Of a stretch of DNA of 64,000 nucleotides, positions 13,358-29,626 are shown piece by piece. Location: sequence record OP752703.1; one strand, 5' to 3'. The first letter of the stretch is position 1, and every line of letters starts with the position of its first letter. The notes beneath the pieces are model-generated. The model saw only the letters and a program-made list of their open reading frames with translations, did not search any database and had not been told where the DNA came from. The translations under genes and the position numbers were made by a program.

Positions 13358-13576
13358 ATGCCAGTAATGAAACGCCTACATTTTATAACACTTAATGGTG
13401 TAGCTCTAAAATTACCATTAATTAGATTCGCTCACCATTCAGATATTGATTTTGCTACTCCATTTCGCGCAAAACAAGCCAAACAATTCCATCTTTTATA
13501 CGATTTCATAGACTGCGATAATCATAAATTGTATTCATTTACCAAATCGGATATATTATACGGACCAGAGAAATGA
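13358..13576 (+). CDS. Tyr-rich array member 13
   Basis: KQFHLLYDF. Confidence 0.8.
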   Translation: MPVMKRLHFITLNGVALKLPLIRFAHHSDIDFATPFRAKQAKQFHLLYDFIDCDNHKLYSFTKSDILYGPEK

Positions 13577-14356: not shown

Positions 14357-14358
14357 TT

Positions 14359-14598
14359 ATGAGAAATGATGGCATTGTAGAGGAAGAATCACTTCTGTTC
14401 ATCTACTTCTACTCAAAGGGTATGAGGGAAGATCGCAAGCTTGATATCTACAACACAGTCCAGACCCCATATTGTATTCAGATGCGTAAGCAATTCTATT
14501 ACTACTACGATTTCCTACAAGTTACTAAGATTGAATCCATGTATGAATGTGATGAATTCTTTAACATTGACCTATATTATGGGGATAAGCTACAATGA
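14359..14598 (+). CDS. Tyr-rich array member 17
   Basis: KQFYYYYDF. Confidence 0.8.
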   Translation: MRNDGIVEEESLLFIYFYSKGMREDRKLDIYNTVQTPYCIQMRKQFYYYYDFLQVTKIESMYECDEFFNIDLYYGDKLQ

Positions 14599-14837
14599 CA
14601 ATACTGTATGGATTCGATACTAATAATATAGAAAGCAAAACCTGTTACTTGTATGTCGTAACAAAGGAACAAGAAAAACATCATGGTGGACTAATCGAGT
14701 ATATGACATTTTATCCAGAGACAGCCATGGCTAGGAAGAATCACTTTGCTTACTACGATTTTTTATATAGAAATAAGATATTAGCGTTTCTTCCTAACGA
14801 CAATAATCTATTATACATTTATTATGAAGCAGTCTAA
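14595..14837 (+). CDS. Tyr-rich array member 18
   Basis: KNHFAYYDF. Confidence 0.8.
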   Translation: MTILYGFDTNNIESKTCYLYVVTKEQEKHHGGLIEYMTFYPETAMARKNHFAYYDFLYRNKILAFLPNDNNLLYIYYEAV

Positions 14838-15081
14838 CATTTGCCGCGCAGGCGTTCAGAATCAGTTCAATAAGGCAAGTCTGTCAACGGTAAAGCTGGC
14901 CTATTTTGTAACCTATCATATTGTTACCGACCCTCCGACATTCAATCCATATGTGGAGGTTCCCGGTTGCAATATTGACGATCTAAAGCGTTATCTGCTA
15001 TATTACGAATTCATTCCCCGCAATACGTACTTCTATCATGACAAGAGTACGGGAGGATATATGGTGTCTTATGAGGAATAA
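14824..15081 (+). CDS. Tyr-rich array member 19
   Basis: KRYLLYYEF. Confidence 0.8.
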   Translation: MKQSNICRAGVQNQFNKASLSTVKLAYFVTYHIVTDPPTFNPYVEVPGCNIDDLKRYLLYYEFIPRNTYFYHDKSTGGYMVSYEE

Positions 15082-15322
15082 TGAATACCTGATCTATCCT
15101 CCGTTGAATTTGATGTTCTGTACCTTCACGTCAAAGTTTACAGCGCAGAAGCCCCATTCAAGTCGCATGAAGGTGTTCATGATGCGCTATGAGTTTCTGT
15201 TAGAGACATATAAGCGAATCATTAATCTAGTAGAGAAAGACCCCCGGACAGCCTTATGCCATTGTCGATTACATGTACCAAGATTGAACAATTATCCTAT
15301 GCATCTTCCCATAAAGATGTAA
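15071..15322 (+). CDS. Tyr-rich array member 20
   Basis: KVFMMRYEF; start uncertain. Confidence 0.75.
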   Translation: MRNNEYLIYPPLNLMFCTFTSKFTAQKPHSSRMKVFMMRYEFLLETYKRIINLVEKDPRTALCHCRLHVPRLNNYPMHLPIKM

Positions 15323-15492
15323 CATTTGTGGCCTACGAGACTCCTATTCCGGTATCAAATAATGGGAAAGTGAGAAATTTAAAAGCTAGAAAGTATTACA
15401 TGGCTCATTATGAATTTCTCATGGGTGAATTTGAAATTGTCCATACCCCTAAAAAAGAATACTACATCATAGACTACCTATATGGACTATAA
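15256..15492 (+). CDS. Tyr-rich array member 21
   Basis: KYYMAHYEF. Confidence 0.8.
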   Translation: MPLSITCTKIEQLSYASSHKDVTFVAYETPIPVSNNGKVRNLKARKYYMAHYEFLMGEFEIVHTPKKEYYIIDYLYGL

Positions 15493-15691
15493 TTATTACT
15501 TATATCGCTCTGGCGGTGCCGATGTAGCCTTCATGACCTCTAGTTATGGCTACACAATTGATGACATAGAAACTTATACACGCACTGTAAAGTATTACAT
15601 GGCCCGATATGACCTCTTATTTGATATCAATAACGTCAAATTCTACCCCTCGCATGACTATTGTATGGTAGACTATACCTATGAAGAATAG
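15482..15691 (+). CDS. Tyr-rich array member 22
   Basis: KYYMARYDL. Confidence 0.8.
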   Translation: MDYNYYLYRSGGADVAFMTSSYGYTIDDIETYTRTVKYYMARYDLLFDINNVKFYPSHDYCMVDYTYEE

Positions 15692-15932
15692 TTTCGGTGC
15701 ATACACTTACTTTGAAAAGGACAATCTACACCTAGACTCCTACTTTGTTACCCGTAGTCAGGAAGACGCTTATAAGATGGATTACAAGGTCGCCCATAAG
15801 CAAGAAGCCAAAATCTATCTGGCCCGCTATGATCTAATCTTCGAAGCATATCACGTTAACTTTGTCAACGTTACCAACTTCATCAACGATCCATACCGTA
15901 TGATTGAGTACCAACATGCCCCACCCGAATGA
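15681..15932 (+). CDS. Tyr-rich array member 23
   Basis: KIYLARYDL. Confidence 0.8.
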   Translation: MKNSFGAYTYFEKDNLHLDSYFVTRSQEDAYKMDYKVAHKQEAKIYLARYDLIFEAYHVNFVNVTNFINDPYRMIEYQHAPPE

Positions 15933-16161
15933 CACTGACAATGAAGATTATGTATCTGTGAACGTTCCGAGCAGAAACAGCGCTGGAGTTTATGGATCGG
16001 TGATCTACTTTGTTTCATACAGATTCAAGAAGGCAGACCGCCATCTTAGAAACATATCCTCCCGAAAACACTACCTCAATATCTATGATTTCATTGATAA
16101 AGATGGGGAAATAAACTACCACGACGAAGGCGCATTATCTATGGTAGAATATAAAACATGA
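15904..16161 (+). CDS. Tyr-rich array member 24
   Basis: KHYLNIYDF. Confidence 0.8.
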   Translation: MSTNMPHPNDTDNEDYVSVNVPSRNSAGVYGSVIYFVSYRFKKADRHLRNISSRKHYLNIYDFIDKDGEINYHDEGALSMVEYKT

Positions 16162-16397
16162 AGATTCCAACCCAACAAGTCGCAACCTATATGTCCTCGT
16201 TAATTAATATGAACGGGGACGTTGTTTCATTGGAATTCTACAACTATGAGCTAAATGAAGACGATGAATACGACTTCCCTACAGAACATGACGAATCTAA
16301 AGATTTCCTCAGACTGTATGACTTCATGGGCCATGTAATGCGACTTACATTCGTTAGAACCTACCGAAGAGCCGTGGGAATTGAGTACGACCTATGA
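16158..16397 (+). CDS. Tyr-rich array member 25
   Basis: KDFLRLYDF, ends GIEYDL. Confidence 0.8.
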   Translation: MKIPTQQVATYMSSLINMNGDVVSLEFYNYELNEDDEYDFPTEHDESKDFLRLYDFMGHVMRLTFVRTYRRAVGIEYDL

Positions 16398-16639
16398 CAG
16401 AAATCAATAGAAACTTCTACTACTGGTATACGCCCCAAAACTATAACCATTCCACAACGGCCACTATCGGCGTTGGAATGATTAGCTACCGTATATCTAA
16501 ACACAACACGTTTGCATTCGACATTAGCCCTAAAGATATAAAAACCTACCATCGAATCTATGACTTCTGTTTCGACCAAGCCACCATTAGAGTCAATCTA
16601 ATGAAAGCTAATGGAACCAGAATCGAGTACGAACTATGA
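16394..16639 (+). CDS. Tyr-rich array member 26
   Basis: KTYHRIYDF, ends RIEYEL. Confidence 0.8.
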   Translation: MTEINRNFYYWYTPQNYNHSTTATIGVGMISYRISKHNTFAFDISPKDIKTYHRIYDFCFDQATIRVNLMKANGTRIEYEL

Positions 16640-16848
16640 TTTTATTTACAATCCGCTATGCCTACTCCTACTGCGAAACTAAAGGCATCGGCTACCTAAA
16701 CTATAATAGTGCGTCGGATAATGAATATGACTTCGATGCCTATGAACAGAAACTCTACCTGCAAAGGTATGACTTCCTAGTAGACCAAATGAGGCGTGAG
16801 TGCTATGATAAGCCCTATAAGGCAGTAAGAATTGAGTATGAGATATGA
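16636..16848 (+). CDS. Tyr-rich array member 27
   Basis: KLYLQRYDF, ends RIEYEI. Confidence 0.85.
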   Translation: MILFTIRYAYSYCETKGIGYLNYNSASDNEYDFDAYEQKLYLQRYDFLVDQMRRECYDKPYKAVRIEYEI

Positions 16849-17066
16849 CCTACAGACACACCTATTCCTTTGAGTATGAATCACAAGTCGGCTTCATTAT
16901 TGGAGCGGGCTTCGTATGCTGTCCAGTCAGTCAGTATAGCGGTGAAGACAACTCCCCCTTTAATCTAAAGCTGTATCTCAACCGATACGACTTCCTAGAA
17001 ACCGAAGAGTCTGCTTCATTCTTCTATCAAGCATATGGTGCAGTCAAAATCGAGTACGAATTCTGA
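16845..17066 (+). CDS. Tyr-rich array member 28
   Basis: KLYLNRYDF, ends KIEYEF. Confidence 0.85.
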   Translation: MTYRHTYSFEYESQVGFIIGAGFVCCPVSQYSGEDNSPFNLKLYLNRYDFLETEESASFFYQAYGAVKIEYEF

Positions 17067-17314
17067 TGCATAGACTCCAATACTCCTTCGAATACCAAAC
17101 CGGCCATCGTTTTAAACCTTTTAACACCATTATCAATGGTGCCTGTTATATGTGCTACCCTGATAATCTCACTAAAGATGAATCAGAAGAACTTAAAAAG
17201 CCATTAAGACATAAGATATATTTTCAACGATACGACTTCCTAATGGATCAACAAATAAATCCCTTCTATTATGGATCATACAATCAAATCAAAATCGATT
17301 ACGAATTCCAATGA
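17066..17314 (+). CDS. Tyr-rich array member 29
   Basis: KIYFQRYDF, ends KIDYEFQ. Confidence 0.85.
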   Translation: MHRLQYSFEYQTGHRFKPFNTIINGACYMCYPDNLTKDESEELKKPLRHKIYFQRYDFLMDQQINPFYYGSYNQIKIDYEFQ

Positions 17315-17523
17315 GTAATAATCAAGCCTACGCCATCGGCGACTGTAACAATATCTTCTACTTCCTCGTCTGTAAAACCATGGACTTGAAATATGAAGTC
17401 ATTGCTTTGCATAGAAGAAAAGCCTACATGCTATACTACGATATGTTCATCGATTCCATAACAGCAGACTGTAATCAGAACCACTATCACGAATACCTAA
17501 TGTGGAGATATGAACTTCAATGA
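17311..17523 (+). CDS. Tyr-rich array member 30
   Basis: KAYMLYYDM. Confidence 0.8.
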   Translation: MSNNQAYAIGDCNNIFYFLVCKTMDLKYEVIALHRRKAYMLYYDMFIDSITADCNQNHYHEYLMWRYELQ

Positions 17524-17732
17524 ACAAGTATTACATGAAAGACCTCAGTCCACTCAATCCACACCCCTATCACTGCATCGGATTCAGTGACGACCACCTG
17601 TCACATCTATACTTTAATTCATCTATTGCCGATGCGAAATTCCATCTGCTACACTACGACTTCAACAATATCCGTTCTTGGGAGCAAACCACTAATGGAT
17701 ATGAAGTAACTATGTGTGTATACCACCTATGA
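17520..17732 (+). CDS. Tyr-rich array member 31
   Basis: KFHLLHYDFNNI. Confidence 0.85.
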   Translation: MNKYYMKDLSPLNPHPYHCIGFSDDHLSHLYFNSSIADAKFHLLHYDFNNIRSWEQTTNGYEVTMCVYHL

Positions 17733-17962
17733 ACATTTATTACATTTCAAATATAAATCCAGAAGAAGGATACATCGGTAAACTATCAGCCGACTCCCCT
17801 TTCTATGCCCTAGGTTTCACCCCTAGAGATATGCGTGTCTATAACGCCCATAGCAGAGTACACACAAAGCTATATCTAAATCGCTACGAATTCACAGAAG
17901 CATCAGACTGGAAAACCACAATCAACGGCAGAGACGAACCCATGGTGATGTATTACGTATGA
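17729..17962 (+). CDS. Tyr-rich array member 32
   Basis: KLYLNRYEF; start at ATGA overlap. Confidence 0.8.
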   Translation: MNIYYISNINPEEGYIGKLSADSPFYALGFTPRDMRVYNAHSRVHTKLYLNRYEFTEASDWKTTINGRDEPMVMYYV

Positions 17963-18180
17963 ATAAGTTCTACACCTATTACACGACAGACCTTGATTTC
18001 TCTCCTAAAGCTACCTATCACCTAATAGGATTCTGTAGTACACACAAGGACTACCTATACCGCCCGGAATCTATAGCCGACGCAAAGATTCATCTACTCA
18101 ACTACGACTTCAATAATATACGAAAGTGGTCCCATTCCGTTGATAGACACAATATCACTATGGTAGTATACAATCTATGA
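17959..18180 (+). CDS. Tyr-rich array member 33
   Basis: KIHLLNYDFNNI. Confidence 0.85.
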   Translation: MNKFYTYYTTDLDFSPKATYHLIGFCSTHKDYLYRPESIADAKIHLLNYDFNNIRKWSHSVDRHNITMVVYNL

Positions 18181-18389
18181 AGCACTATTACATCACCGAT
18201 GCCGATATCAAAGAAACTCCATCCTATCACGGCATTGGATTCGATAACAGATTCCCATCCTACCTGTACTCCCCTGTAGGACGACACGACGCAAAGATTC
18301 ATCTACTCAACTACGACTTCAATAATATCCCATCTTGGTATCACACCACTAATAATGCAAAGGTCACATTAGTCATATACAACCTATGA
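18177..18389 (+). CDS. Tyr-rich array member 34
   Basis: KIHLLNYDFNNI. Confidence 0.85.
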   Translation: MKHYYITDADIKETPSYHGIGFDNRFPSYLYSPVGRHDAKIHLLNYDFNNIPSWYHTTNNAKVTLVIYNL

Positions 18390-18922
18390 AAGTAAACTTC
18401 AAACCCGCTGGCACCATCTTCTATAACGACGACCCTGCTATCGATAAGACAATCTTCTCAGCCACATTCGCTATCCCTACAAAGTACTTCTATACTAAAA
18501 CTATCCCTAATGAAATCAATGCCGGTGTCAAATACCTCACACAAAAACACCCCAATACAACTATAGACAGAATAAGCACACAAGCACTTAAACTGTATAT
18601 GATCCTGTACGACCTATGGGAATCTCCACTGTATAAAGTAGTAGATGAACTAGAGACTATTACCTATGTCTATATCAGAACAGATATAAACTACAATGGT
18701 GATTACTACCCTATGAATATTGCATACTATCCTAAGAAGGAAACAGACAAGAGCAATAACCCCCTCAGCCTAACGCATGCGTTAGGACATAAGAAGGGAC
18801 AGATGCATACATTCAGTACAGGGACTATCGAACATGATACTAGTAGAGTCATAGCAGTAGATGGACACGCTATGGATAGAATAGTATTCCCCTATAAGCC
18901 TAAGACTAATAAAGCCCTATAA
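18386..18922 (+). CDS. Tyr-rich array member 35 (double length)
   Basis: KLYMILYDL plus extra C-terminal segment. Confidence 0.8.
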   Translation: MKVNFKPAGTIFYNDDPAIDKTIFSATFAIPTKYFYTKTIPNEINAGVKYLTQKHPNTTIDRISTQALKLYMILYDLWESPLYKVVDELETITYVYIRTDINYNGDYYPMNIAYYPKKETDKSNNPLSLTHALGHKKGQMHTFSTGTIEHDTSRVIAVDGHAMDRIVFPYKPKTNKAL

Positions 18923-18940
18923 GAATAATATAGGGCTTTT
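18911..18940 (+). terminator. intrinsic terminator closing the array
   Basis: AAAGCCCTAT...ATAGGGCTTTT. Confidence 0.8.
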
Positions 18941-19337
18941 ACTCTGTATGGGGGACTTAGTTGTATATGAATTTTAAAAATGTACTCATTTAAGAGAATA
19001 TACAACTAAAAACTTAATCGGTAAGTTATTGATTAGTATGGGGATGGGTAAGAGTGTTGATATAACTTAATTAGAAAATTATAGGGGAAATAGTGGAGAA
19101 TTGTGGGAAAATGTATCGTAAATGATTGATTTACGGTGGATTTGATGATTCTTCTGTGCTGTATAGGGGGAGTTCAACAAACTTTTAAAAATTTCCCCAC
19201 CGAAGTTAACAGGCGTTAACTTTAATGAAAATGGTGTCATCACGGTATCTCCCTATCATTGTAGCACTGTAGTGGGGTGGTGTACTACCTAGGTAACACA
19301 CCTAGGCTGTAGAATGCCTTCTCCCACGATTGCGTCC

Positions 19338-19467
19338 ACTGTATCACGTAGTCAATGGTCTGTCAATACTTGACAACCTGATACCTGTGTTTTAAAATAG
19401 GTGGGAGGCCGGGGGACTGTGGCCTGATGGGGTTGGGTGTTGACACGGTGTTGGAATGCTGTATACT
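19338..19467. promoter_or_regulatory. back-to-back and tandem sigma70 promoters
   Basis: minus TTGACA-17-TACAGT; plus TTGACA-17-TAAAAT (19371-19399) and TTGACA-16-TATACT (19440-19467). Confidence 0.7.
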
Positions 19468-19495: not shown

Positions 19496-19708
19496 ATGGG
19501 TGTGTTACTTTTTGTTCTAGCGTTGATCCTGATTGGTATTCGCTTCTACCGTGAGAGCAGGTACATTAAGGGCTGGCTAGATTGGGTTAGTACGTTGGCC
19601 CTGTATGGTGCTATGATCTACGTGTGTAGCTTCTTGATGCAGGTTCCGCATGCTGGTATTATTGTCATTCCGATTCTAGTTGTTCTAGCTGCACAGTACA
19701 TGGATTAA
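19496..19708 (+). CDS. small 3-TM membrane protein (paralogue of next gene)
   Basis: hydrophobic; MGVLLFVLALIL..FYRESRY vs MGIFLFIVCLLL..FFRDSKW. Confidence 0.75.
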   Translation: MGVLLFVLALILIGIRFYRESRYIKGWLDWVSTLALYGAMIYVCSFLMQVPHAGIIVIPILVVLAAQYMD

Positions 19709-19917
19709 TGATTATGGGTATCTTTTTGTTTATTGTTTGTCTATTGCTATTGGTTTTCTGTTTCTTTAGGGACAGTAAATGGGCCAGTGGTGTAGGCGAC
19801 TGGATTTTTAACATTGTAATATACGGTATCATGGCGATAGCCTGTACGTTTGTTATTGTATACCCTGTAGAGGGATTGTTGCTTGTGGCGATATTGATCG
19901 CCTTTGCTTGGGATTAA
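19708..19917 (+). CDS. small 3-TM membrane protein
   Basis: hydrophobic, TAATG coupling. Confidence 0.75.
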   Translation: MIMGIFLFIVCLLLLVFCFFRDSKWASGVGDWIFNIVIYGIMAIACTFVIVYPVEGLLLVAILIAFAWD

Positions 19918-19920
19918 AGT

Positions 19921-20169
19921 ATGTCTGAGAATGCTAGACTGATTCTACAAATTATTGCGACGCTACCGTGTCTTGCTATGTTCGTTGGTATTGTGTACTA
20001 TGATCGTTGGTTGTATCGTTTATCTCCGATCCTCACGTTATTGGCTTGGCTTTTCATCTTTGTGATGTGTATTGGACCGATTTGGTATGCACCTATCCTT
20101 GCATTGGTAAGTGTACCTTTGCTATTCTTACAACTCCAACACAGTAGAGCTTGCTCTAGAGACGACTAA
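19921..20169 (+). CDS. small 3-TM membrane protein
   Basis: hydrophobic. Confidence 0.75.
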   Translation: MSENARLILQIIATLPCLAMFVGIVYYDRWLYRLSPILTLLAWLFIFVMCIGPIWYAPILALVSVPLLFLQLQHSRACSRDD

Positions 20170-20492
20170 TGACATTTGTTAATTCATTTCAGGCATTGTG
20201 TATGGTGCTGATTCTAGCGGCATCGATTTTGTGGACAGTGGTAATCTTTCAGGAAGAGAGCCGCCGTCCGTTGTTCGGTAAGGAATCGCTAGGGACTGGC
20301 TGGGAAATGTTGGGCTTCATTAACATTCCCTTCATTGCTATCCCTCTAGCAGTCTTGTGTGGCGTTCCGGGTGGTATGGGTGCTGTGATTGCTATTGTAC
20401 TCTATGGGCTGTTAGGCGCATGGTTCATCCTTGACATTAAATTCATTCACCCTTATCATGGGGAGCATAGGAAGAAGAGTGGATATTATTAA
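20169..20492 (+). CDS. membrane protein
   Basis: three hydrophobic segments. Confidence 0.7.
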   Translation: MTFVNSFQALCMVLILAASILWTVVIFQEESRRPLFGKESLGTGWEMLGFINIPFIAIPLAVLCGVPGGMGAVIAIVLYGLLGAWFILDIKFIHPYHGEHRKKSGYY

Positions 20493-20874
20493 CGAAATTG
20501 GTTTTACATTCTTAATCGTAGGCGGCTATGCTTTTTGTGGCTGGCTGACCTATGTTCTAGGTAAAGCTACTTGTGCGTATACGGTCATTCTAAAGGCTTG
20601 GCGCACCCGTAAAGAATTAGAGCGATCTGAACTGATCGATGGGTGGAATGCTTATGCTCGCTATAGTGGTGAGTTAAATGGCTTAGACCCTTTGTTCACT
20701 TTCCTATGGCCTTTTGGTTTGATTGGCTGTATTTCAACTATCTTGGTCTTTACTCCTTATGCGATGTATAAGCGATGGTGGACTTACAAGGTTAAGCCGG
20801 GACAATTTACGCTACGTCCACGTTGGTGGTCAGTAGATACACTTCTTCATAACATTAACAAGAAAATCAAATGA
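20431..20874 (+). CDS. membrane protein, WP/PxW family (start uncertain)
   Basis: FLWPF...PRWWSVDTLLHNIN. Confidence 0.7.
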   Translation: MTLNSFTLIMGSIGRRVDIINEIGFTFLIVGGYAFCGWLTYVLGKATCAYTVILKAWRTRKELERSELIDGWNAYARYSGELNGLDPLFTFLWPFGLIGCISTILVFTPYAMYKRWWTYKVKPGQFTLRPRWWSVDTLLHNINKKIK

Positions 20875-21254
20875 GCTACCATTCCCCGCTAGAAGTTTTT
20901 GCTACAATTGCAGTCATCTACATTAGTGGTGCGGCTGTGACCCATCTAGGTTCTCGCATACTGGAAGTATTGAACTATCTGCGCTATACTTCTGTCGATG
21001 GTACTAAGGTAACTGCGTATGGTATCAAGCGAGCTTGGCGTCTAGAGGGTGAGAGTGATACCTTCGAGTATGTTCTATTCGTGGGAACGTTGTTCTGGCC
21101 CTTTGCATGGATTGTTAATCCCTTCCTGTATCACAAGACGTTCATGTGGGTGATTGGTTATCCTGCTCGTTCGTTGAATATTCGTATGCCTTACTGGATG
21201 ACAGTACAGGGCTTTGCTGACCGTGTTAATAAAAAGAGAGAGGCACGACGCTAA
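20871..21254 (+). CDS. membrane protein, WP/PxW family
   Basis: LFWPF...PYWMTVQGFADRVN. Confidence 0.75.
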   Translation: MSYHSPLEVFATIAVIYISGAAVTHLGSRILEVLNYLRYTSVDGTKVTAYGIKRAWRLEGESDTFEYVLFVGTLFWPFAWIVNPFLYHKTFMWVIGYPARSLNIRMPYWMTVQGFADRVNKKREARR

Positions 21255-21571
21255 TGTTAGAATCTGTAGGAATTGTGTGTGGTGTCCTATCGGTCATCAT
21301 TGGTGTATACTTCGCTGGTAGTGTATCTGTAGACTCGATCTATGGATATTACCCTGAAAGCTATGGTATGCCTGCTATGTTCGGCTGGCCCATTGCGTTC
21401 TTCTGCACTATTCTATCTGCTGGTTTGTGGTTTATTGGGGTGTTATGCTTTGTTGTTTTTGTAGCTATTGTAGTACACCTACACCAGATTAGGGGACCAC
21501 GTGGTTGGTATGATAACAATACTGATCCGCCACCGCGAAAGACTGATAATTCTTTAAAGGATTTGGAATGA
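21254..21571 (+). CDS. membrane protein
   Basis: hydrophobic, FGWPI. Confidence 0.7.
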   Translation: MLESVGIVCGVLSVIIGVYFAGSVSVDSIYGYYPESYGMPAMFGWPIAFFCTILSAGLWFIGVLCFVVFVAIVVHLHQIRGPRGWYDNNTDPPPRKTDNSLKDLE

Positions 21572-21975
21572 CTGTTATCGACGTAATTAGATGGATCATC
21601 CTAGGCTACATTGCCGGCGCTATGCTTATGTTGGTAGGCTATTGTGTTGGCTGGGTGTGGGGTGCTACACTATCATTTGTAGAGTCGTGGGCAAAGCGAG
21701 AGCCTTTGACTGCTGATGACCTTAGTATGGACATTCGAGAAATGGGACCGCCTTTGTGGGTGATGCCTTTTATTAGTCCGCTAATCATTGGGTTGTTCGC
21801 TTTAATCTTTACTTGTGGTACAGTCTATGTCTTAGCCATGGTGATGCAGCACAGAGTAGTACCGTTGTTCAAGCGCATCACACTTGGAAATTTTAACTTG
21901 CCATCGTGGTTTAGTCTTGATAGACTAGCCACATCACTTAACAAGCTAACTGGCACTCACAATGAATCTAAATGA
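21568..21975 (+). CDS. membrane protein, PxW family
   Basis: PSWFSLDRLATSLN. Confidence 0.75.
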   Translation: MTVIDVIRWIILGYIAGAMLMLVGYCVGWVWGATLSFVESWAKREPLTADDLSMDIREMGPPLWVMPFISPLIIGLFALIFTCGTVYVLAMVMQHRVVPLFKRITLGNFNLPSWFSLDRLATSLNKLTGTHNESK

Positions 21976-22339
21976 TTTGCCCACGCACCACTTGATTCCG
22001 ATCCTACTGATTGGTTACGGCCTTATGTCCTTTGTGGCCAGAGGAATCTTGTTCGGCCTACACGCTATTCTTATCTACTTTAAGTCCCGTGTATTGAATT
22101 TTGAAGTATCGGGCATTCACTTGGAACGTTATCCGGGTGCAGACTTGGGTCATGGTGAAATGCTATTCATCTGGCCGTTCGCTCTAGTCATCATGGGTAT
22201 CAGTATGATCGGTGATATTATCCATTTCATGTGGAGGGCTGTGTTCACTACGGATGGTAGTAAGATTCGTCTGATTCCGAAGTGGTTCAGCATTGATGGT
22301 CTAGCTCGTATGATGAACGGACACAAAAAGGAAAAGTAA
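21962..22339 (+). CDS. membrane protein, WP/PxW family
   Basis: FIWPF...PKWFSIDGLARMMN. Confidence 0.75.
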   Translation: MNLNDLPTHHLIPILLIGYGLMSFVARGILFGLHAILIYFKSRVLNFEVSGIHLERYPGADLGHGEMLFIWPFALVIMGISMIGDIIHFMWRAVFTTDGSKIRLIPKWFSIDGLARMMNGHKKEK

Positions 22340-22710
22340 TGGAACCTAAAGTTTTGTATATTGCTGGATTTATGGTGCTATACTGCCTTGGTGCTATCCT
22401 GCTCCCTAAGATATTGATTATCCCCAACTTCATTGCTGAATTCGTTATCGCGTTCTTAGAGCGTCGTCCAATGAGCTACCATAAGGTGGCAGACGTTGAC
22501 TTTTTAATTGACGATGAACTATTCTGCATCATGATGTTTGCGGCATGGCCTCTGGTAATTTTGGTGGTGTGTATTGTCCATATCATCAGGGTGATTTCCG
22601 CTGCCCTAGACAGGTTCAATAACTACCGATTCACTGGCCCGAAGTGGTTGACGCTAAGGGGTTGGGTGGGTTACACTAATTCTCTACTTGGACACAAAGA
22701 ACAGAAATGA
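22339..22710 (+). CDS. membrane protein, WP/PxW family
   Basis: AAWPL...PKWLTLRGWVGYTN. Confidence 0.75.
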   Translation: MEPKVLYIAGFMVLYCLGAILLPKILIIPNFIAEFVIAFLERRPMSYHKVADVDFLIDDELFCIMMFAAWPLVILVVCIVHIIRVISAALDRFNNYRFTGPKWLTLRGWVGYTNSLLGHKEQK

Positions 22711-23033
22711 CTATTCTTTCCATTATCTCACTAACCGTATTAGTTCCTAGTATCTTCTATAACGCCATGAGGTTTGGAGCTTCTCTTGGCATGTATATGG
22801 ATGACAAGTGGCGTGAAACCAAGAACCCGCTATATGCTGTGGGTTATGTACTCACGATCATTGGCACGATGTTTGGTGGTGGCGGTAGTTTGATGGCGGC
22901 TATCCACTTCTATCATGGCAATGAAACTGTTATGATGGTCGTGGCATCTATCTCTATCCTTCTAACCATCTACTTCTCTTACTATCAAAGGTTTGGTAAA
23001 TCACTATGGGTGAAACGCTTCCTGTACTCTTAA
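22707..23033 (+). CDS. membrane protein
   Basis: three hydrophobic segments. Confidence 0.7.
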   Translation: MTILSIISLTVLVPSIFYNAMRFGASLGMYMDDKWRETKNPLYAVGYVLTIIGTMFGGGGSLMAAIHFYHGNETVMMVVASISILLTIYFSYYQRFGKSLWVKRFLYS

Positions 23034-23365
23034 TTGTTGTTGGCTCCCTACTAGGGAGTATGGCGTTAACCGTGTTCAATCTTTATGTTTGCGTATTGAT
23101 TGATGCATGGTATAATCAAACCCCGTTGGGATATGATTCATTAGAACTGGACCGTATTCTATGGGACTTTGGTAATCTGGACTACCCACTGTTCTTTGGT
23201 GGTACTATCACTGGTCTATTGACAGCGGTAACCACTGTACGTATGCTCTTCTATGTGATTGTATTCATTCCGATGGGTATTTTCAAAATCATGGGCGCTA
23301 GGTACAGATTGGATTCTGACAACATAGCCCGTATCTTAAACAATCTCCTAATTAGGAAACGATAA
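23006..23365 (+). CDS. membrane protein (start uncertain)
   Basis: ends DNIARILNNLL like family members. Confidence 0.7.
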   Translation: MGETLPVLLIVVGSLLGSMALTVFNLYVCVLIDAWYNQTPLGYDSLELDRILWDFGNLDYPLFFGGTITGLLTAVTTVRMLFYVIVFIPMGIFKIMGARYRLDSDNIARILNNLLIRKR

Positions 23366-23808
23366 TGAATATTTCTGATCTTTCTGGCTGGCAAATGTTT
23401 GGTGCATACATTGGTTGTATGATTGCTTCCCCGTTCCTCTATTGGATTCTGTGGTTTGTAGGGACATTTATTCATAGTTACGTGGGCGGTAACCGTATCA
23501 AGGTTGGTGCATTAAATTACTTTAAGTCATTCGAACCGGTTTCTGATAGAAGGACTGACCAAGAAGCTGCATCCTTCTGGTTTGGATTTAATATGTTTGT
23601 TGGTTGGCTACTCTGGCCGATTGGCTGGACGCTTGCTAGTATTGGCTTTATCATTACGATCATTACTGCTTTCTTCCAAGCTGCTGCACAGGGACTTGAC
23701 TCTGCCTTTGGAAAGCGCGAGAATGGCGAAGACGTTTGGGACTTCGGTGCTTTAACTCGCCGCCTAAATGCATCTGCTGAAAATCGCAAGAATAAGGCGA
23801 TCAAGTAA
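23365..23808 (+). CDS. membrane protein, WP family
   Basis: LLWPIG...WDFGALTRRLN. Confidence 0.75.
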   Translation: MNISDLSGWQMFGAYIGCMIASPFLYWILWFVGTFIHSYVGGNRIKVGALNYFKSFEPVSDRRTDQEAASFWFGFNMFVGWLLWPIGWTLASIGFIITIITAFFQAAAQGLDSAFGKRENGEDVWDFGALTRRLNASAENRKNKAIK

Positions 23809-23866
23809 TGAATGAAATCCTCTCCGAACTAACCCACTGGCTACAATACAAGGTAATTGACAAACT

Positions 23867-24313
23867 ATGGAACTAATTAGCACTCTTCTAAGCTTCGGTA
23901 AGCTCAATGCTGGTATCTCTATTGGCGTGACCTTCACCTTCCTCTTCCTTTACTCTGTAGTAATCCTACGTAAGCGTCGTGCGGTTAGTGAAGTCTATAC
24001 TGCCGACCTGAACGAACTGGAACTACTAGCACGTAATGAAGAAGTATCGAACGCCCGTCTATCTGCCTACAACCGCGTAACCCGTAACAAGGAAGCTCTA
24101 GAGGCTTTGCGTAAGGGTAGTGGCGTAATCGATGCCTACAATCATATGCTACTGGCTGGCTTTGCATTCTGTATCCCTGTATACTTCCTATGGCTCCCGG
24201 CTCTGATCCTGACTCTACCGATTGGTCTAGCTCTGGCCTGTGTCTACCCGGACAAGGTTAAGGCTCTACTTGCTAAGACGGTAGCTGTTGACAAGAAGCC
24301 TGCTAGCCAGTAA
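23867..24313 (+). CDS. membrane protein
   Basis: two hydrophobic segments, FLWLPAL. Confidence 0.75.
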   Translation: MELISTLLSFGKLNAGISIGVTFTFLFLYSVVILRKRRAVSEVYTADLNELELLARNEEVSNARLSAYNRVTRNKEALEALRKGSGVIDAYNHMLLAGFAFCIPVYFLWLPALILTLPIGLALACVYPDKVKALLAKTVAVDKKPASQ

Positions 24314-24344
24314 TATACAAACTCTTCCCAACGAGTGAATCACC

Positions 24345-24641
24345 ATGATGCTGTTTGACATTGTACGTGACATTAACGACAAGATTACCCACTCTATGAA
24401 TGAGGGTAAGCCCGGTAAGCGCGGAATTTATCTAACAGGAACCACGGATGGTTACAATGTAGTGTTTCACTTCATGGGCGAAGTAGTGTGGGACTCAACT
24501 GTGTGGGCCTATCACTATGAAGGCGATGACGTGACCGACGAACAGGTTGCTCTAGAAATGGAGCGCATCCGTGGTCACGTCACCGCCAAAGCACAGAAAC
24601 TAATCAATCAATTCTTTAACATCCAACTGGATAACGATTAA
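24345..24641 (+). CDS. hypothetical protein
   Basis: ORF track. Confidence 0.7.
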   Translation: MMLFDIVRDINDKITHSMNEGKPGKRGIYLTGTTDGYNVVFHFMGEVVWDSTVWAYHYEGDDVTDEQVALEMERIRGHVTAKAQKLINQFFNIQLDND

Positions 24642-24943
24642 TGAACCTTGCTGACCTTTCCCCCGGCTATCAAATGATCTATATCATTTCGTGCGTACTA
24701 CTGTCTGCTCTGCATCTATTTCTGATGGAAAAGGCGCTGTATAAAATTTATCGTATCCTGTTCAACCGTCATACATTCAGCAATAAGGTAGAGAAGTTCG
24801 GGTTTTACCTGCACGGCATTCTAGCGTATGCTGGTGGTATGACTCTGGTTCTCTCACCGCTGCTATTCATTGACCTAAAGTATGGTCTAATGGGAACCGG
24901 TTTTATTCTATTGATTCGTCTACTACTAAAGGGTAAGCTATAA
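24641..24943 (+). CDS. membrane protein
   Basis: hydrophobic, TAATG coupling. Confidence 0.7.
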   Translation: MNLADLSPGYQMIYIISCVLLSALHLFLMEKALYKIYRILFNRHTFSNKVEKFGFYLHGILAYAGGMTLVLSPLLFIDLKYGLMGTGFILLIRLLLKGKL

Positions 24944-25701
24944 TGAGTCGTGCTTCTGATGCAAAGTCTCTAGGTGATCGAATGAAGGAGTATGAAGATG
25001 CATACCGCATCAAGCTCTCCCGTCGAATGCCTGTAATTATCCGTCTAGATGGTAAGGCGTTCCACACTTGGACTAAGGGCCTAGACCTACCGTTCGATGA
25101 TACCTTTATGGGTATGATGGCGGCTACTACCAAGTTCCTAGTAGATAACATTCAGGGTGCTGTGTTCGCATACACTCAATCGGATGAAATCTCAATCCTC
25201 TTGCGCAACTACGATTCGCTGACCACCGATCCTTGGTACGACAACAATCTTCAAAAGATGGTGTCGGTTGCCGCCAGTCTAGGCACTGGCCGTTTTAACC
25301 AGTTGTGTAATGAATTCCTAGAAGACCCTAAGCTGGCCTTCTTTGATGCCCGCGCTTTCATTCTGCCCAAGGAAGAAGTAGTTAACTATTTCATCTGGCG
25401 TCAGCAGGATGCAACCCGCAACAGTATTCGTGCTGTAGCGCATCACTACCTTGGTCACAATGCTATCCTTGGAAAGAATAACAGTGAAGTGCAGGATATG
25501 TTGATGGGGCTGGACGTTCCCGTAAATTGGAACGATTACCCTATTCACAAGAAGCGCGGATACTGCTATAATAGCCTTTCTAAGGAAATCGATCAGCACA
25601 TTCCGATCTTCTCTGCAAGTCGAGATTATGTCGGTCTACACCTAGAAAAGCTAGAAGATGCATCGCTGGAAGAAGTCCAGCAACTTATGGGTGAAGAGTA
25701 A
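24943..25701 (+). CDS. thg1: tRNA-His guanylyltransferase Thg1/TLP (3'-5' polymerase)
   Basis: IRLDGKAFH, YTQSDEIS, FDAR, WRQQDATRNS. Confidence 0.92.
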   Translation: MSRASDAKSLGDRMKEYEDAYRIKLSRRMPVIIRLDGKAFHTWTKGLDLPFDDTFMGMMAATTKFLVDNIQGAVFAYTQSDEISILLRNYDSLTTDPWYDNNLQKMVSVAASLGTGRFNQLCNEFLEDPKLAFFDARAFILPKEEVVNYFIWRQQDATRNSIRAVAHHYLGHNAILGKNNSEVQDMLMGLDVPVNWNDYPIHKKRGYCYNSLSKEIDQHIPIFSASRDYVGLHLEKLEDASLEEVQQLMGEE

Positions 25702-26006
25702 TGTGGGATAAAATTAAGTATAATATAGGTGCGCTTGCTATTGCACTTCTATTATTTGTACCATTTCTATTATGGGTATTCGCTCCACCGACTAGCCCAG
25801 CGGATAATGATTGGTATTTGGTTTGCTCAGGAAAAGACAAGGACTATCTTGTAAAGTCCGAAGGAAAGCCTTATACTAAGGACGGCTTCATTTATGTTGA
25901 TGGAGATTCATTCATCACTGCGGAAGCTGGTATGACCTGTAAGCCTGTAACGGGTGAAGTGGTGCGCGCCGCCATTGGTCAAAAGGGCCTAGAACAAGGA
26001 AAATAA
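25701..26006 (+). CDS. membrane-anchored hypothetical protein
   Basis: N-terminal TM, coupled start. Confidence 0.7.
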   Translation: MWDKIKYNIGALAIALLLFVPFLLWVFAPPTSPADNDWYLVCSGKDKDYLVKSEGKPYTKDGFIYVDGDSFITAEAGMTCKPVTGEVVRAAIGQKGLEQGK

Positions 26007-26009
26007 AAT

Positions 26010-26186
26010 ATGAAGAACGAAACTCGTTACTTTGTGTTCAGTAAGGTTGCAGCAGTCCGCACTGGCATGCTAAAATCCCTAAAGAACGCAGAGACTCGAC
26101 AGGAAGCCCGCGACTTTAAGTCAGAAAAGGCAACCCCGTCAATCTACGGTATCTTTGATCGTCATAGTCATTCGATCATTCGCTAA
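26010..26186 (+). CDS. small basic hypothetical protein (58 aa)
   Basis: hand-translated MKNETRYFVFSKVAAVRTGMLKSL... Confidence 0.6.
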   Translation: MKNETRYFVFSKVAAVRTGMLKSLKNAETRQEARDFKSEKATPSIYGIFDRHSHSIIR

Positions 26187-26195
26187 AATTTGAAA

Positions 26196-26230
26196 GGGGG
26201 GTTGACAACCCCCAAACCTTCCCCTATAAT
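26196..26230 (+). promoter_or_regulatory. sigma70 promoter with -35 inside a hairpin
   Basis: GGGGGTTGACAACCCCC; TTGACA-17-TATAAT. Confidence 0.85.
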
Positions 26231-26269
26231 TCTCACTATCAACTCCCCCTTACAGGAACATAGAGAAAC

Positions 26270-28522
26270 ATGAAGCTGAACCACGACAATAACGCAGCAG
26301 TCTCCACCGGTGCTGAACGCTCGGGTACTTTCGGTATCGCCAATAACGGCAAGGCGTTCAAGGTTCTATCCGATAGCATCTATCAGGATAAGATCGGTTC
26401 GATGATCCGCGAGACTGCTTGTAATGGTCTTGACTCACACATTCAGAATGGCAACCCGGATACCCCGATTCAGATTCACATGCCTGACGCTTTCGAGCCG
26501 TGGTACAGTGTAGAAGATTTCGGTCTAGGTATGTCCCCGGACACCATCGACAACGTTTTCACCGTTTATTTCTCGTCAACCAAGGCTCAGTCCAATGACG
26601 TGATCGGTGCATTCGGCCTAGGCGCAAAGACTCCGTTCGCGTACACTGACAAGTTCACCGTAACGTCTACCCACAATGGTAAGCGCTACCTGTACGCCAT
26701 GTACTACAACGACAACAACGAACCGCAGTCCGACCTGATGGATACTTCCGATGTACCGGAAGGCACCCCGAATGGTGTAAAGATTGAAGTTCCGGTTCTA
26801 CCTGAACACTTCCGCGAATTCCGCGAAGCTCTAAAGAACCAGCTACGTTTCTTTGCAGTAAAGCCGATCATCCTAAATGGTGGTCAGTTCGAGTTCGATG
26901 CAACCCCGCGTGCGCTACTGGAAACTAAGTCGGTAACTGTACTTGACACTGCTGGTATGTCGAGCTATAGTGATCTACGTAAGTCGTTCATCGTGCAGGG
27001 ACCGGTCGGTTACGCAATCGATGAAGCTCTACTAATGCGTCGTATGGAAGAAGCTGTGGATCAGGACTTGGTGCCGGGTCTAACTCGTAAGAACCTAGAG
27101 TTCCTACGTGTCATGCTTCGCACTGCAACGTGGTTCAAGTTTGATATTGGTGAAGTCGGTGTTACTGCATCCCGTGAAGGTGTAGAATATACCAAGCACA
27201 CCATTAAGAATTTCGCTACCAAGCTAATCACTATCCATAAGGAAATGATTGACTACGTAGAAAGTTCGCTAACGGGCGCTAAGACTGCATACGAACGTGT
27301 TAAGCTACTAAACCGTATGACTTCATTCCGTAACCTGATTCAGCATATCGAGATTGATATTGGTAATGCTAAGAAGGATCGTTATGAAGAACATTATTCC
27401 TTCCACTTCTCTGACGCTCCGATCTTTAAGACCGTTGCTAAGAATGCGCAGGGAACTGTAACTCACTCGGTTAACAACTTCCAGATCACGGCCTATGAAC
27501 GTGCGATGGGTGGTAGCCTAAAGACTTCGCGTATGACTGACATTACGCTAACGCCGGATGACAACGATAATATCGTAATCATTCTACGTGACACGAACAG
27601 TCGCCCGATCCTGCGCCTACGCCAGTATTTTGAAACGAATGCTAACGAAAAGCGCGTAATTGTTGTAGCCACCACTGGCGCTATGACCATCTTTGATGGC
27701 GGTGCGGTAAAGAATGCGGTCATTGACGCATTTGGTGGTTTTGATGGCCTAAACGTCATCAATCTAAGTGATTGCCCTGAGCCTCCGGCTGGTAGCTCTG
27801 TACGTAACCGTGCAGCTTACACCCGCCCGACCGGTTACGTAATGCCGAAGCACAGCTTTGCTCTAGACAGCATCGCAAAGTGGAATCGCGTATTCGAGGA
27901 ACCGGACGACCCGGAATTCGGCATGGGTGATGACGGCGTTGAAGTAGAGACTGCGCTTTATGTGCTAGTTGATCGCCAGCGAGTCCAGACGCAAGTCGAT
28001 ACTCGTCTGTTTAACGCTCTAAAGGAAGAAGGAATGCTAGATAGTATTGGTATCTACGGTTTCCGTATCGCCGATGAAGCAAAGCTACAGTCCTCCGGTA
28101 TTAACTGGATCAGTCTGCCCGACTTCCTAGCTGCCAAGCGTGAAGAAATTGCAAAGGATAAGAAGATTAAGCGCTCCGCTTATGCTACCATTGCAAGTGA
28201 CCACGTGAAGCGCAAGGTAAACGTTTCACTGCTAGAGCTTGAAGAAAGTAAGCTAGACTCTAAGTCCGAACTACATAGTCTACGTAAGATTCTAAATGAA
28301 TCTGACAAGATTGTTAACTCGAACGGCGTGTCACATCGTATGCTGGAAATCGCAGGCCATAAACTGCCTAAGACTTTCCTACAGAAGATTGACCGTCTAA
28401 GTAGCAGCTTCGCAGGTAAGAATCCGTTTATCAGTAAGCTACTGCCGTACCACTACAGCCGTCTGGAAGAACGTGATATTGAACACGCTGTGGACTATAT
28501 CAACTGGAACGCCAGCAAGTAA
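26270..28522 (+). CDS. rIIA: rIIA protein (GHKL/Hsp90-like ATPase N-domain)
   Basis: LSDSIYQDKIGSMIRETACNGLDSH, VEDFGLGMS, GAFGLGAK; followed by rIIB. Confidence 0.9.
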   Translation: MKLNHDNNAAVSTGAERSGTFGIANNGKAFKVLSDSIYQDKIGSMIRETACNGLDSHIQNGNPDTPIQIHMPDAFEPWYSVEDFGLGMSPDTIDNVFTVYFSSTKAQSNDVIGAFGLGAKTPFAYTDKFTVTSTHNGKRYLYAMYYNDNNEPQSDLMDTSDVPEGTPNGVKIEVPVLPEHFREFREALKNQLRFFAVKPIILNGGQFEFDATPRALLETKSVTVLDTAGMSSYSDLRKSFIVQGPVGYAIDEALLMRRMEEAVDQDLVPGLTRKNLEFLRVMLRTATWFKFDIGEVGVTASREGVEYTKHTIKNFATKLITIHKEMIDYVESSLTGAKTAYERVKLLNRMTSFRNLIQHIEIDIGNAKKDRYEEHYSFHFSDAPIFKTVAKNAQGTVTHSVNNFQITAYERAMGGSLKTSRMTDITLTPDDNDNIVIILRDTNSRPILRLRQYFETNANEKRVIVVATTGAMTIFDGGAVKNAVIDAFGGFDGLNVINLSDCPEPPAGSSVRNRAAYTRPTGYVMPKHSFALDSIAKWNRVFEEPDDPEFGMGDDGVEVETALYVLVDRQRVQTQVDTRLFNALKEEGMLDSIGIYGFRIADEAKLQSSGINWISLPDFLAAKREEIAKDKKIKRSAYATIASDHVKRKVNVSLLELEESKLDSKSELHSLRKILNESDKIVNSNGVSHRMLEIAGHKLPKTFLQKIDRLSSSFAGKNPFISKLLPYHYSRLEERDIEHAVDYINWNASK

Positions 28523-28528
28523 TCGGGC

Positions 28529-28577
28529 GGGTTGTCAGCAAATAGGTGTTGACAACCCATCCAAAACGAAGTACAAT
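28529..28577 (+). promoter_or_regulatory. sigma70 promoter with -35 in a hairpin arm
   Basis: GGGTTGTCA...TGACAACCC; TTGACA-17-TACAAT. Confidence 0.8.
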
Positions 28578-28612
28578 TCACATCACCAAAACACAACAAG
28601 GAAAACATCCAA

Positions 28613-29626
28613 ATGTCAAACATTAAGTCAGTACGTACCGCCAAGGGCGTTAGCATCTTCCTACCGGGTAAGTCACCTGTCTCCATCGACGTTGGCGCTG
28701 GTAACTATGAAGCTGTCATCGAAGCCCTAAATGCGGGCGACCTAGCCAAGCTAGAGCTAGCCCTAAACATCCGTCAGTACGTTGTTGAACAGAGCTTCGG
28801 TAAGTTCAAGGTTGACGAACGCGGCAACCTAGTTTACGCTCCGGGCAACTACACCCTACCGGCTGAACTAACCGAGTACGTCCTACCGATCCTAAAGAAG
28901 GCCCGCAACGTAGAGCCGATCCTACTATACATCGAGCATCTACTAAGCAACCCGAGCCAGTTTGCTCAGAAGGAACTACTACAGTGGGTTGACAAGGCTA
29001 AGATGCCGATCACCCCGGACGGCCACTTCCTAGCTTACAAGCGCGTTCGTGACGACTACAAGGACGTACACAGCGGCACCATGGACAACTCAGTTGGTCA
29101 GGTAGTCCAGATGCCACGTCTAGCAGTAGACGACGACCGCACCCGTACTTGCTCGGCTGGTCTACACTTCTGCTCCAAGGATTACCTAAGCCACTTCGGC
29201 GGCGACCGTATCGTTGTAGTAAAGATCAACCCGGCTGACGTAGTATCCATCCCGGACGACTACGACTTCACCAAGGGCCGCGCATGGCGCTACGAAGTAG
29301 TTGCTGAACTAAGCACCCTAGACGGCGAGCTAATCCGCGAACTAGACGCTTTCTTCATCGATGAATTCGACAGCCGTGGCGAAGAAGTGGTAGAGCTAAA
29401 GCAGGTTTCAAAGAACGCTCAGGGCGCAGTCAGCCTAACCAAGGTTGTAGCTCCCAAGGCCGACTCGGTAATCGGTAAGACTTCACTAACCGACGATCAG
29501 GTCCGCAAGATTCGCAAGCTACTAAAGCAGGGCGGCACTGTCGCTGGCGTAGCTCGCACCATCGGCACCAGCGAGCGTACCGTCGCCCGCATCCGTGACG
29601 GCGAAACCTACACCAACGTCAAGTAA
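28613..29626 (+). CDS. rIIB: rIIB protein with C-terminal HTH
   Basis: ITPDGHFLAYKRV, CSAGLHFCS, VKINPADVVSIP. Confidence 0.92.
   Translation: MSNIKSVRTAKGVSIFLPGKSPVSIDVGAGNYEAVIEALNAGDLAKLELALNIRQYVVEQSFGKFKVDERGNLVYAPGNYTLPAELTEYVLPILKKARNVEPILLYIEHLLSNPSQFAQKELLQWVDKAKMPITPDGHFLAYKRVRDDYKDVHSGTMDNSVGQVVQMPRLAVDDDRTRTCSAGLHFCSKDYLSHFGGDRIVVVKINPADVVSIPDDYDFTKGRAWRYEVVAELSTLDGELIRELDAFFIDEFDSRGEEVVELKQVSKNAQGAVSLTKVVAPKADSVIGKTSLTDDQVRKIRKLLKQGGTVAGVARTIGTSERTVARIRDGETYTNVK

Follow-up and report, generated by a model that had tools for sequence, protein, structure and literature searches.

A two-helix membrane protein family in a small-gene array of Stenotrophomonas jumbo phages

What does a lytic jumbo phage gain from a long run of small membrane proteins encoded side by side, and are these proteins variants of one another? 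The question is raised by positions 19496–24313 of a 64,000-nucleotide stretch of sequence record OP752703.1 (hereafter the window, to which all coordinates refer). The region is 100% identical in the Stenotrophomonas jumbo phages CM1 (319.5 kb) and RAS14 (319.6 kb); among isolated phages, XacN1 and Xoo-sp13, two Xanthomonas jumbo phages, are closest to them (36–39% identity in rIIA). In the RAS14 record every gene of this array is labelled "hypothetical", and g03 is left unannotated. A first-pass annotation of the DNA had described about 14 paralogues. We found instead that the array combines one family of 7 members, or no more than 8, with small membrane proteins of at least five unrelated kinds, whose genes are interspersed among those of the family. 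This family, which we call the WP family after one of its motifs, is a WP / P-x-W...N two-helix family undescribed until now.

Composition of the array and architecture of the WP family

The array comprises 14 consecutive plus-strand open reading frames (ORFs) of 69–148 amino acids (aa), and its 13 gene junctions are overlaps of 1–28 nucleotides (nt) in 11 cases, a 3-nt gap in one and a 58-nt gap in another. A Kyte-Doolittle scan detected two to three hydrophobic segments in all 14 proteins, which bears out their initial description as small membrane proteins, and none in the 31 coding sequences (CDS) of the upstream Tyr-rich array (10261–18389). Ratios of nonsynonymous to synonymous substitution rates (dN/dS), calculated against two metagenomic relatives that are 94–95% identical in DNA, were below 1 for every gene (0.07–0.64), so the 14 genes are real and constrained. 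Selection on the array is purifying (pooled dN/dS 0.29), and its most constrained gene is g14 (0.07–0.09). The genes are as follows (TM, transmembrane segment).

19496–19708, plus strand: g01, 70 aa, 2 TM; paralogue of g02
19708–19917, plus strand: g02, 69 aa, 2–3 TM; paralogue of g01
19921–20169, plus strand: g03, 82 aa, 2 TM; orthologues in the metagenomic contigs L094, L095 and L099
20169–20492, plus strand: g04, 107 aa, 2–3 TM; weak relative of g16
20479–20874, plus strand: g05, 131 aa, GTG start; WP family, subfamily C; LWPF; tail PRWWSVDTLLHNIN
20871–21254, plus strand: g06, 127 aa; WP family, subfamily G; FWPF; tail PYWMTVQGFADRVN
21254–21571, plus strand: g07, 105 aa, 2 TM; GWPI; doubtful divergent member of the WP family
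21568–21975, plus strand: g08, 135 aa; WP family, subfamily D; WP lost (ISPL); tail PSWFSLDRLATSLN
21962–22339, plus strand: g09, 125 aa; WP family, subfamily E; IWPF; tail PKWFSIDGLARMMN; the protein modelled below
22339–22710, plus strand: g10, 123 aa; WP family, subfamily B; AWPL; tail PKWLTLRGWVGYTN
22707–23033, plus strand: g11, 108 aa, 3 TM; separate family, two copies in other lineages
23006–23365, plus strand: g12, 119 aa; WP family, subfamily F; WP degenerate (LWDF), tail shortened
23365–23808, plus strand: g13, 147 aa; WP family, subfamily A; LWPI; tail variant ending LTRRLN
23867–24313, plus strand: g14, 148 aa; TM, coiled-coil-like segment, TM; restricted to the clade

Family membership was assessed with leave-one-out hidden Markov models (HMMs) searched against 702 ORFs from the window, XacN1 and Xoo-sp13. 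Six proteins (g05, g06, g08, g09, g10 and g13) returned at rank 1 (E = 1.5e-9 to 4e-4) and g12 was recovered at E = 1.2e-3, while g07 was not (E = 2). The other membrane proteins of the array never scored in these searches, so composition alone cannot account for the family matches. Single-linkage clustering with relatives added joined g07 to the WP family only via its L094 orthologue and one weak link (4.5e-5) to a g13-type protein, and placed g01/g02, g03, g04 with g16, g11 and g14 in separate small families. A single 14-member paralogue family was thus rejected, since HMMs and clustering both back seven members, perhaps eight. The first two genes had also been set apart as a pair of their own, and this holds (g01 versus g02, blastp 4e-14). 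Orthologues of g03, a gene with a dN/dS of 0.32–0.37, were found in L094, L095 and L099 at E = 1e-9 to 5e-14. The paralogy of g04 and g16 is weak (blastp 0.002) and runs through their L012 and L095 orthologues; through it, one small membrane family brackets the WP array and lies on both sides of g15.

The WP and P-x-W...N strings pointed out in the first-pass annotation proved to be true family signatures that shuffled sequences rarely match. WP occurs in six array proteins (g05, g06, g07, g09, g10 and g13), and in each of them it opens the second hydrophobic segment; shuffling gave a mean of 1.9 proteins with WP, and six were reached in 0.6% of shuffles. All five quoted C-terminal strings are exact, and at least one match arose in only 0.01% of shuffled sets. 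An alignment of 32 members contains three conserved features: W-x2-[RKQ]-x2-[LIVM] directly behind TM1 in most subfamilies, [FLV]WP[LIF][GA] opening TM2, and a tail of the form P-x-W-h-[ST]-x3-[LF]-x3-h-N followed by basic residues. The exceptions are subfamily D, which has lost WP, and subfamilies A and F, in which the tail is altered. Between subfamilies, identity amounts to 21% in TM2, 19% in the C-tail, 14% in TM1 and 11% in the loop, whereas within subfamilies it is 26–31% for every region. TM1 and the loop are therefore subfamily-specific, and TM2 and the tail are family-wide.

AlphaFold2, given 29 diverse members, modelled g09 as a hairpin of two long helices (residues 8–45 and 63–96), capped at the tip by two short ones and followed by a C-terminal helix (111–122) of lower confidence. 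The predicted local distance difference test score (pLDDT) of this model was 87 and its predicted template-modelling score 0.71; the pLDDT was only 70 when the program was given 18 close sequences. Mean net charges over the 32 members were +5.3 for the C-tail (K+R density 0.18), −1.2 for the loop and −0.6 for the N-tail, and applying the positive-inside rule to these values predicts cytoplasmic ends and a periplasmic loop. The family is thus predicted, and only predicted, to form a hairpin in the inner membrane with both termini inside (N-in/C-in). The alignment, the AlphaFold2 model and the charge counts agree on its defining traits, namely a two-helix hairpin, a basic tail and a TM2 that opens with WPxG.

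Distribution, age and allele exchange

A word-indexed search of 5.8 billion proteins returned only near-identical copies and a 69–75-aa family from XacN1-type phages, and a full HMMER scan of 1.84 billion representatives added only 22 further members (E = 2e-14 to 5e-4), which are 113–138 aa long and carry the same motifs. All member-bearing contigs that were looked up have the same synteny: Tyr-rich small ORFs, a 166–178-aa ORF, a non-coding gap, the membrane array, g15, g16, Thg1, rIIA, rIIB and Rnl1. The layout departs from this only in L094, where g16 is not called, and in L099, where the 166–178-aa ORF is missing or a remnant. Counting the window, six lineages carry the array, one of them on a 318-kb contig. 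With g09 as a tblastn query, 50,697 phage records yielded CM1 and RAS14 alone, and the WP family was found in none of 80 Thg1-bearing loci of IMG/VR. Judged from these database searches, the array in this order appears confined, beyond CM1 and RAS14, to a narrow clade of metagenomic jumbo phages.

The closest candidates for outside relatives are XacN1 ORF129 and Xoo-sp13 gp131, uncharacterised single-copy two-TM proteins of 69–95 aa from XacN1-type jumbo phages. Like the WP array, they are encoded just upstream of a g15 homologue and Thg1-rIIA-rIIB, in a downstream order common to XacN1 and Xoo-sp13 (g15 homologue, Thg1, g18 homologue, rIIA, rIIB, RNA ligase, M23 peptidase). They share the layout TM1, W..R..[LM], loop, [FL]WP, TM2; profile-profile comparison with hhalign gave 74% probability and E = 2.8e-5 over 62 columns spanning TM1-loop-TM2, and they scored E = 1e-4 to 1e-2 with leave-one-out WP-family HMMs. 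A pairwise BLASTP comparison between g10 and the ORF129-type protein P0014 gave no match. In contrast to the WP-array phages, which carry six to eight copies, these phages have one, and it is without the basic C-tail that bears P-x-W...N. From these profile matches and the shared position, we regard the 73-aa ORF129-type family as a probable single-copy relative of the WP family without the C-tail.

In a tree of 32 members from five lineages, the family resolved into seven subfamilies, each spanning several lineages and named after g05, g06, g08, g09, g10, g12 and g13; a few additional copies of the g05 and g08 types and a few losses were also seen. Genomes hold six to eight copies. The g13 type (subfamily A) occurs in all five lineages on the tree and also in L099, which reads g03, two genes of the g05 type, g06, g08, g10, g11, g13, g14, g15 and g16. 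Gene order is the same in all lineages, and lengths are kept across the six. Because the subfamilies span lineages and stay collinear, the duplications predate the clade, and we rejected a recent lineage-specific burst of duplication; the tree and the gene order describe a maintained repertoire. The first-pass annotation had called the array a diversified repertoire. It is indeed a hot spot of diversity, but there has been no recent expansion, and seven old subfamilies have been kept in order.

Divergence within this fixed order is pronounced. Between the window and L094, L095 and L012, Thg1, rIIA and rIIB are 74–92% identical at the protein level, whereas orthologues in the WP family share 22–40%; g14 (34–53%) and g15 (73–80%) were measured in the same comparison. 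Even among three phages that are 99–100% identical over Thg1-rIIA-rIIB, the array is interrupted by sharp-edged patches of 69–87% identity that group the phages in conflicting ways: the window differs from the other two at g01–g03, in the 5' half of g07 and in the middle of g13, whereas between g11 and the 5' part of g13 it is L007 that stands apart. Synonymous divergence (dS) is 0.19–0.23 in the array against 0.03–0.05 in Thg1/rIIA/rIIB. Patches, conflicting groupings and high dS together are the signature of recombination importing old, divergent alleles.

Regional dN/dS was 0.31 for TM1, 0.23 for the loop, 0.24 for TM2 and 0.19 for the C-tail; the N-tail value of 2.07 is based on 2 synonymous changes in a segment that partly overlaps upstream genes. 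Positive selection on the loop, considered as a candidate, was not seen, and at this resolution nothing points to it in the other regions either.

Outside the array, the RNA ligase gene (29717–30859) is 92% identical to its counterparts in L004 and L007, with gaps and a dS of 0.16, next to an rIIB that is 99% identical. By these identities it looks like another recombination patch.

Control region and genomic setting

Upstream of g01 lies a non-coding gap of 570 bp, of which about 470 bp are conserved. It contains or adjoins the following features, listed with those that continue and close the unit on the right.

18911–18939, no strand: hairpin with a perfect 11-bp inverted repeat just past a 178-aa ORF; terminator-like, boundary between arrays
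18955–19425, no strand: conserved non-coding control region, in blocks 18955–19195 and 19263–19420
18957–18968 and 18998–19009: 12-bp perfect inverted repeat with a variable loop, in the control region
19279–19302: 24-bp imperfect palindrome, in the control region
19338–19366, minus strand: leftward sigma70-like site, TTGACA-17-TACAGT (TATAGT in other lineages), with TG upstream of the -10; conserved
19370–19398, plus strand: promoter P1, TTGACA-17-TAAAAT, 11/12 consensus positions
19440–19467, plus strand: promoter P2, TTGACA-16-TATACT, 11/12 consensus positions
24345–26186, plus strand: downstream string g15, g16, Thg1, g18 and a 58-aa ORF, tightly packed onto g01–g14
26190–26230, plus strand: G6/C5 stem-loop and promoter TTGACA-17-TATAAT before rIIA; right-hand border of the unit

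The two blocks are 76–87% identical in nucleotides to L095, L011 and L094, whereas the flanking proteins share 22–40%; against L099 the non-coding region is 79% identical over 507 nt. It also holds short direct repeats and an invariant stretch just 3' of the P1 -10 hexamer. The first-pass annotation had placed two strong sigma70 promoters in front of the array, and phylogenetic footprinting over six lineages backs P1: both of its hexamers are invariant and its 17-nt spacer differs in each lineage, a pattern that marks a working promoter well. The window, L004/L007, L011/L093 and L094 all have P2, which is absent from L095; in L099 only its TTGACA is seen. The leftward site diverges from P1. 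Given the sigma70-type character of P1 and P2, the array is probably expressed early.

A structured RNA proved an unsupported explanation for the conservation of the control region, which has no Rfam match, no meaningful covariation or compensatory pairs on either strand, and weak folding energy. A role at the DNA level, such as regulator binding or an origin, seems more likely; candidate roles for the region are those of a regulatory hub, an origin or a template for a leftward RNA of about 420 nt. The element occurs once in the window, blastn of the phage collection retrieved it from CM1 and RAS14 only, and its exact 29-nt pattern was not present in IMG/VR or JGI metagenome contigs.

From the array, the gene string continues unbroken through g15 (98 aa, soluble, PHROG 28415, shared with XacN1 and Xoo-sp13), g16 (24641–24943; 100 aa, 2 TM), Thg1, g18 and the 58-aa ORF, and g15–g18 and the 58-aa ORF probably belong to the same transcription unit as g01–g14. 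The array is the front of a promoter-proximal operon that runs P1/P2, g01–g14, g15, g16, Thg1, g18, and it is part of a hypervariable island, flanked by conserved core genes, in the genome of a T4-related jumbo phage. At the right-hand border the stem-loop overlaps a perfect consensus promoter, whose -35 is carried by the loop. This element resembles the promoter/stem-loop motifs (PeSLs) of T4-type phages (PMC2839356).

Hyperplastic regions of T4-type phages consist of small unknown genes between core blocks, with cassettes of ORFans bordered by early promoter/stem-loop motifs that mediate exchange (PMC2839356, PMC4122927). The present locus is likewise a variable island of small genes without known function between core blocks; it has sigma70-like promoters beside stem-loops at its borders (18911–18939 with P1/P2, and 26190–26230), and its alleles have been replaced by recombination. 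In contrast to those regions, the array is devoid of internal PeSLs, its 14 genes forming one overlapping or abutting string with promoter/stem-loop motifs at the two borders only; its content and order are conserved rather than shuffled by insertion and deletion; and its exchange is allelic, within homologous genes. We conclude that, although the protein family is undescribed, its genomic setting is of a familiar kind.

Several neighbouring features deserve mention in their own right. The 31 soluble CDS upstream have a mean Tyr content of 10.8%, and at 12066–18389 16 of these 31 form one family (phmmer E<1e-3), members of which are detectable in L004, L007/L008/L010, L095/L097 and L098, with similar Tyr-rich ORFs in L099; tblastn of the phage records found this family in no other phage. 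The soluble array is closed by the 178-aa ORF (18386–18922), which has a sub-threshold metzincin-like match (Peptidase_M43, E = 0.004) surrounding a HALGH string without the catalytic Glu. A short remnant with the HALGH string seems to be all that is left of this ORF in L099. Further downstream, the window holds 29 transfer RNA (tRNA) genes at 37632–63181. Two of the ARAGORN calls (54428–54502 and 58328–58403, minus strand) have the anticodons UUA, which reads UAA, and CUA, which reads UAG and is labelled "Pyl". Despite the UUA-anticodon call, TAA is the stop codon in 17 of 21 genes examined in 19496–29626.

Candidate functions of the repertoire

While the descriptive part of this account (family, topology class, distribution and evolutionary mode) is well supported, the mechanism is not. 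Pfam, PHROG, NCBIfam and PADLOC profile scans of the array gave nothing usable, a PDB sequence search gave no match, and Foldseek against BFVD, PDB and AFDB clusters together with an Atlas shape search returned only hits with E>1 or a template-modelling score of ~0.5 on generic hairpins. All ESM Atlas look-alikes of the array proteins scored below 0.9; that of g14 to SIEA (0.80) is within the chance range. A PADLOC "2TM effector" match of g03 was weak (E = 0.006, 13.9 bits, 33 residues) and falls short of PADLOC membership. Against DUF948 (PF06103), g14 of the window gave no match and its L095 orthologue reached 27.6 bits, compared with a cut-off of 37.2.

T4 Imm (PF14373) is a small early inner-membrane protein that confers superinfection immunity. 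The array proteins resemble it in being small, probably early and predicted inner-membrane proteins of a T4-related phage, but they are multi-copy and their motifs differ, and none matched PF14373 or the SieA/SieB models at E<=0.1. Superinfection exclusion and action against abortive infection, the two functions first proposed for the array, thus have no homology support in the profile or fold searches.

The operon adjoins rIIA/rIIB, Rnl1 and Thg1. In T4 the counterparts of these genes are early counter-defence or RNA-repair genes, and in T4-like phages they serve, with a large tRNA set, in counter-defence and RNA repair. These neighbours, together with the sigma70-type promoters, the inner-membrane location, the modular conservation, the retention of old subfamilies and a very fast divergence with allele exchange, lead us to regard an early repertoire for envelope-level conflict or host takeover as the most likely function, a preference that we hold tentatively. 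In such a scheme the proteins would enter the host's inner membrane shortly after infection, their two ends remaining in the cytoplasm. The shared part, TM2 with WPxG and the basic C-tail, usually with P-x-W...N, might serve anchoring, self-association or docking to a common partner, while the subfamily-specific part, TM1 and the predicted periplasmic loop of about 40 aa, could give each paralogue a separate envelope target. The purpose may be to block the entry of rival phages, to neutralise membrane-bound defence effectors or to take over membrane functions, and recombination would reshuffle divergent alleles among co-circulating phages.

Several observations weigh against a conflict or takeover role. 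No array protein matches one of known function, by sequence or by fold, and the early timing is read from the promoters alone. No region has a dN/dS above 1 on reliable counts, the loop included. Old subfamilies in conserved order fit stable, housekeeping-like roles equally well, and part of the fast divergence is what short TM proteins, having few constrained positions, would show anyway. The topology is drawn from charge bias alone, and K and R are also found in the stretch right behind TM1; the amphipathic character of the C-terminal helix is only weak (mean hydrophobic moment 0.30, z 0.4).

A rival explanation is a membrane scaffold for the phage's own cycle, in which the proteins would not be conflict genes but would anchor replication, transcription or assembly, or remodel the membrane. 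The age of the subfamilies, their kept order and purifying selection would suit such a scaffold, as would the probable single-copy relative at the same position in XacN1-type phages and a shared cytoplasmic tail that could dock a phage complex. Orthologues of 22–40% identity next to core genes at 74–92%, and alleles swapped among near-identical phages, are however unusual for core machinery, and copy number in the family varies from 6 to 8 with gains and losses; we consider a scaffold unlikely, though it deserves to be kept in view. At the other extreme, the genes might be weakly constrained ORFan filler of a hyperplastic region, whose only function is tolerated membrane insertion. The absence of known homologues, the high divergence and the variable-island location would all be expected of filler, but a dN/dS of 0.07–0.64 in 14 of 14 genes, three motifs retained at a background identity of 11–21%, lengths and order kept in six lineages and the rise in AlphaFold2 confidence from 70 to 87 with a deeper family alignment speak so clearly for constraint that we disfavour this explanation as highly improbable.

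Two further proposals tie the array to its neighbours, and both strike us as improbable. According to one, holin/antiholin-like hairpins would set lysis timing, several paralogues tuning hole formation or lysis inhibition with rIIA/rIIB, near genes annotated "lysis inhibitor". Class II holins such as the S21 pinholin have two TM, an N-in/C-in topology and a basic cytoplasmic C-terminus, and the WP family is alike in its two TM, predicted topology and basic C-tail. Yet it matches no holin family: faint holin matches came from g03, outside the WP family (PHROG 217, E = 0.008; PF05449, E = 0.099 and 13.1 bits, below the cut-off of 25.4). At 120–150 aa with a 40-aa loop, WP proteins also exceed class II holin size, and seven ordered paralogous subfamilies behind sigma70-type promoters, with Thg1, rIIA, rIIB and Rnl1 as neighbours and no adjacent endolysin, are unlike a lysis-cassette layout. 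According to the other, the membrane proteins would receive or anchor the soluble Tyr-rich paralogues upstream, the two arrays being one system. The first-pass annotation had suggested this partnership and its co-occurrence check. Both arrays do lie in every related contig that reaches far enough (the window, L004, L007/8/10, L095/97, L098 and L099), and both are absent from XacN1, Xoo-sp13 and the 80 other Thg1 loci; but all the contigs belong to one clade, so the co-occurrence amounts to one evolutionary event and is no test of partnership. Moreover, copy numbers differ (16 soluble against 7 membrane members here, 4 against 6 detectable in L095), and the arrays are parted by the hairpin, about 570 bp of non-coding DNA and the membrane array's own promoters.

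To return to the envelope-conflict repertoire, a more specific and quite speculative version of it, to which we give little credence, would make the proteins modular envelope adaptors. Their tails would dock one shared partner, for instance the membrane-associated rIIA/rIIB pair or a host membrane machine, and the seven TM1/loop modules would each recognise a target of their own, for example a defence effector in the membrane or the apparatus by which a rival phage enters, with single-module alleles being traded between co-circulating phages.

Few phage genes are less well understood than those for small membrane proteins, and the handful of these proteins with published work have roles in conflict between phages or with the host. 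The locus offers a compact test set, with seven subfamilies whose shared and specific parts are clear, natural allele swaps among phages that are otherwise identical, and the cultured phages CM1 and RAS14 on Stenotrophomonas maltophilia. Should the array serve exclusion or the disarming of defence, the conflict field would gain a new protein family and a modular logic; if the adaptor version were true, a lytic jumbo phage would possess an exclusion or anti-defence system that recombines and has multiple specificities. Otherwise, the WP family and its conserved control region would still be landmarks of this jumbo-phage clade.

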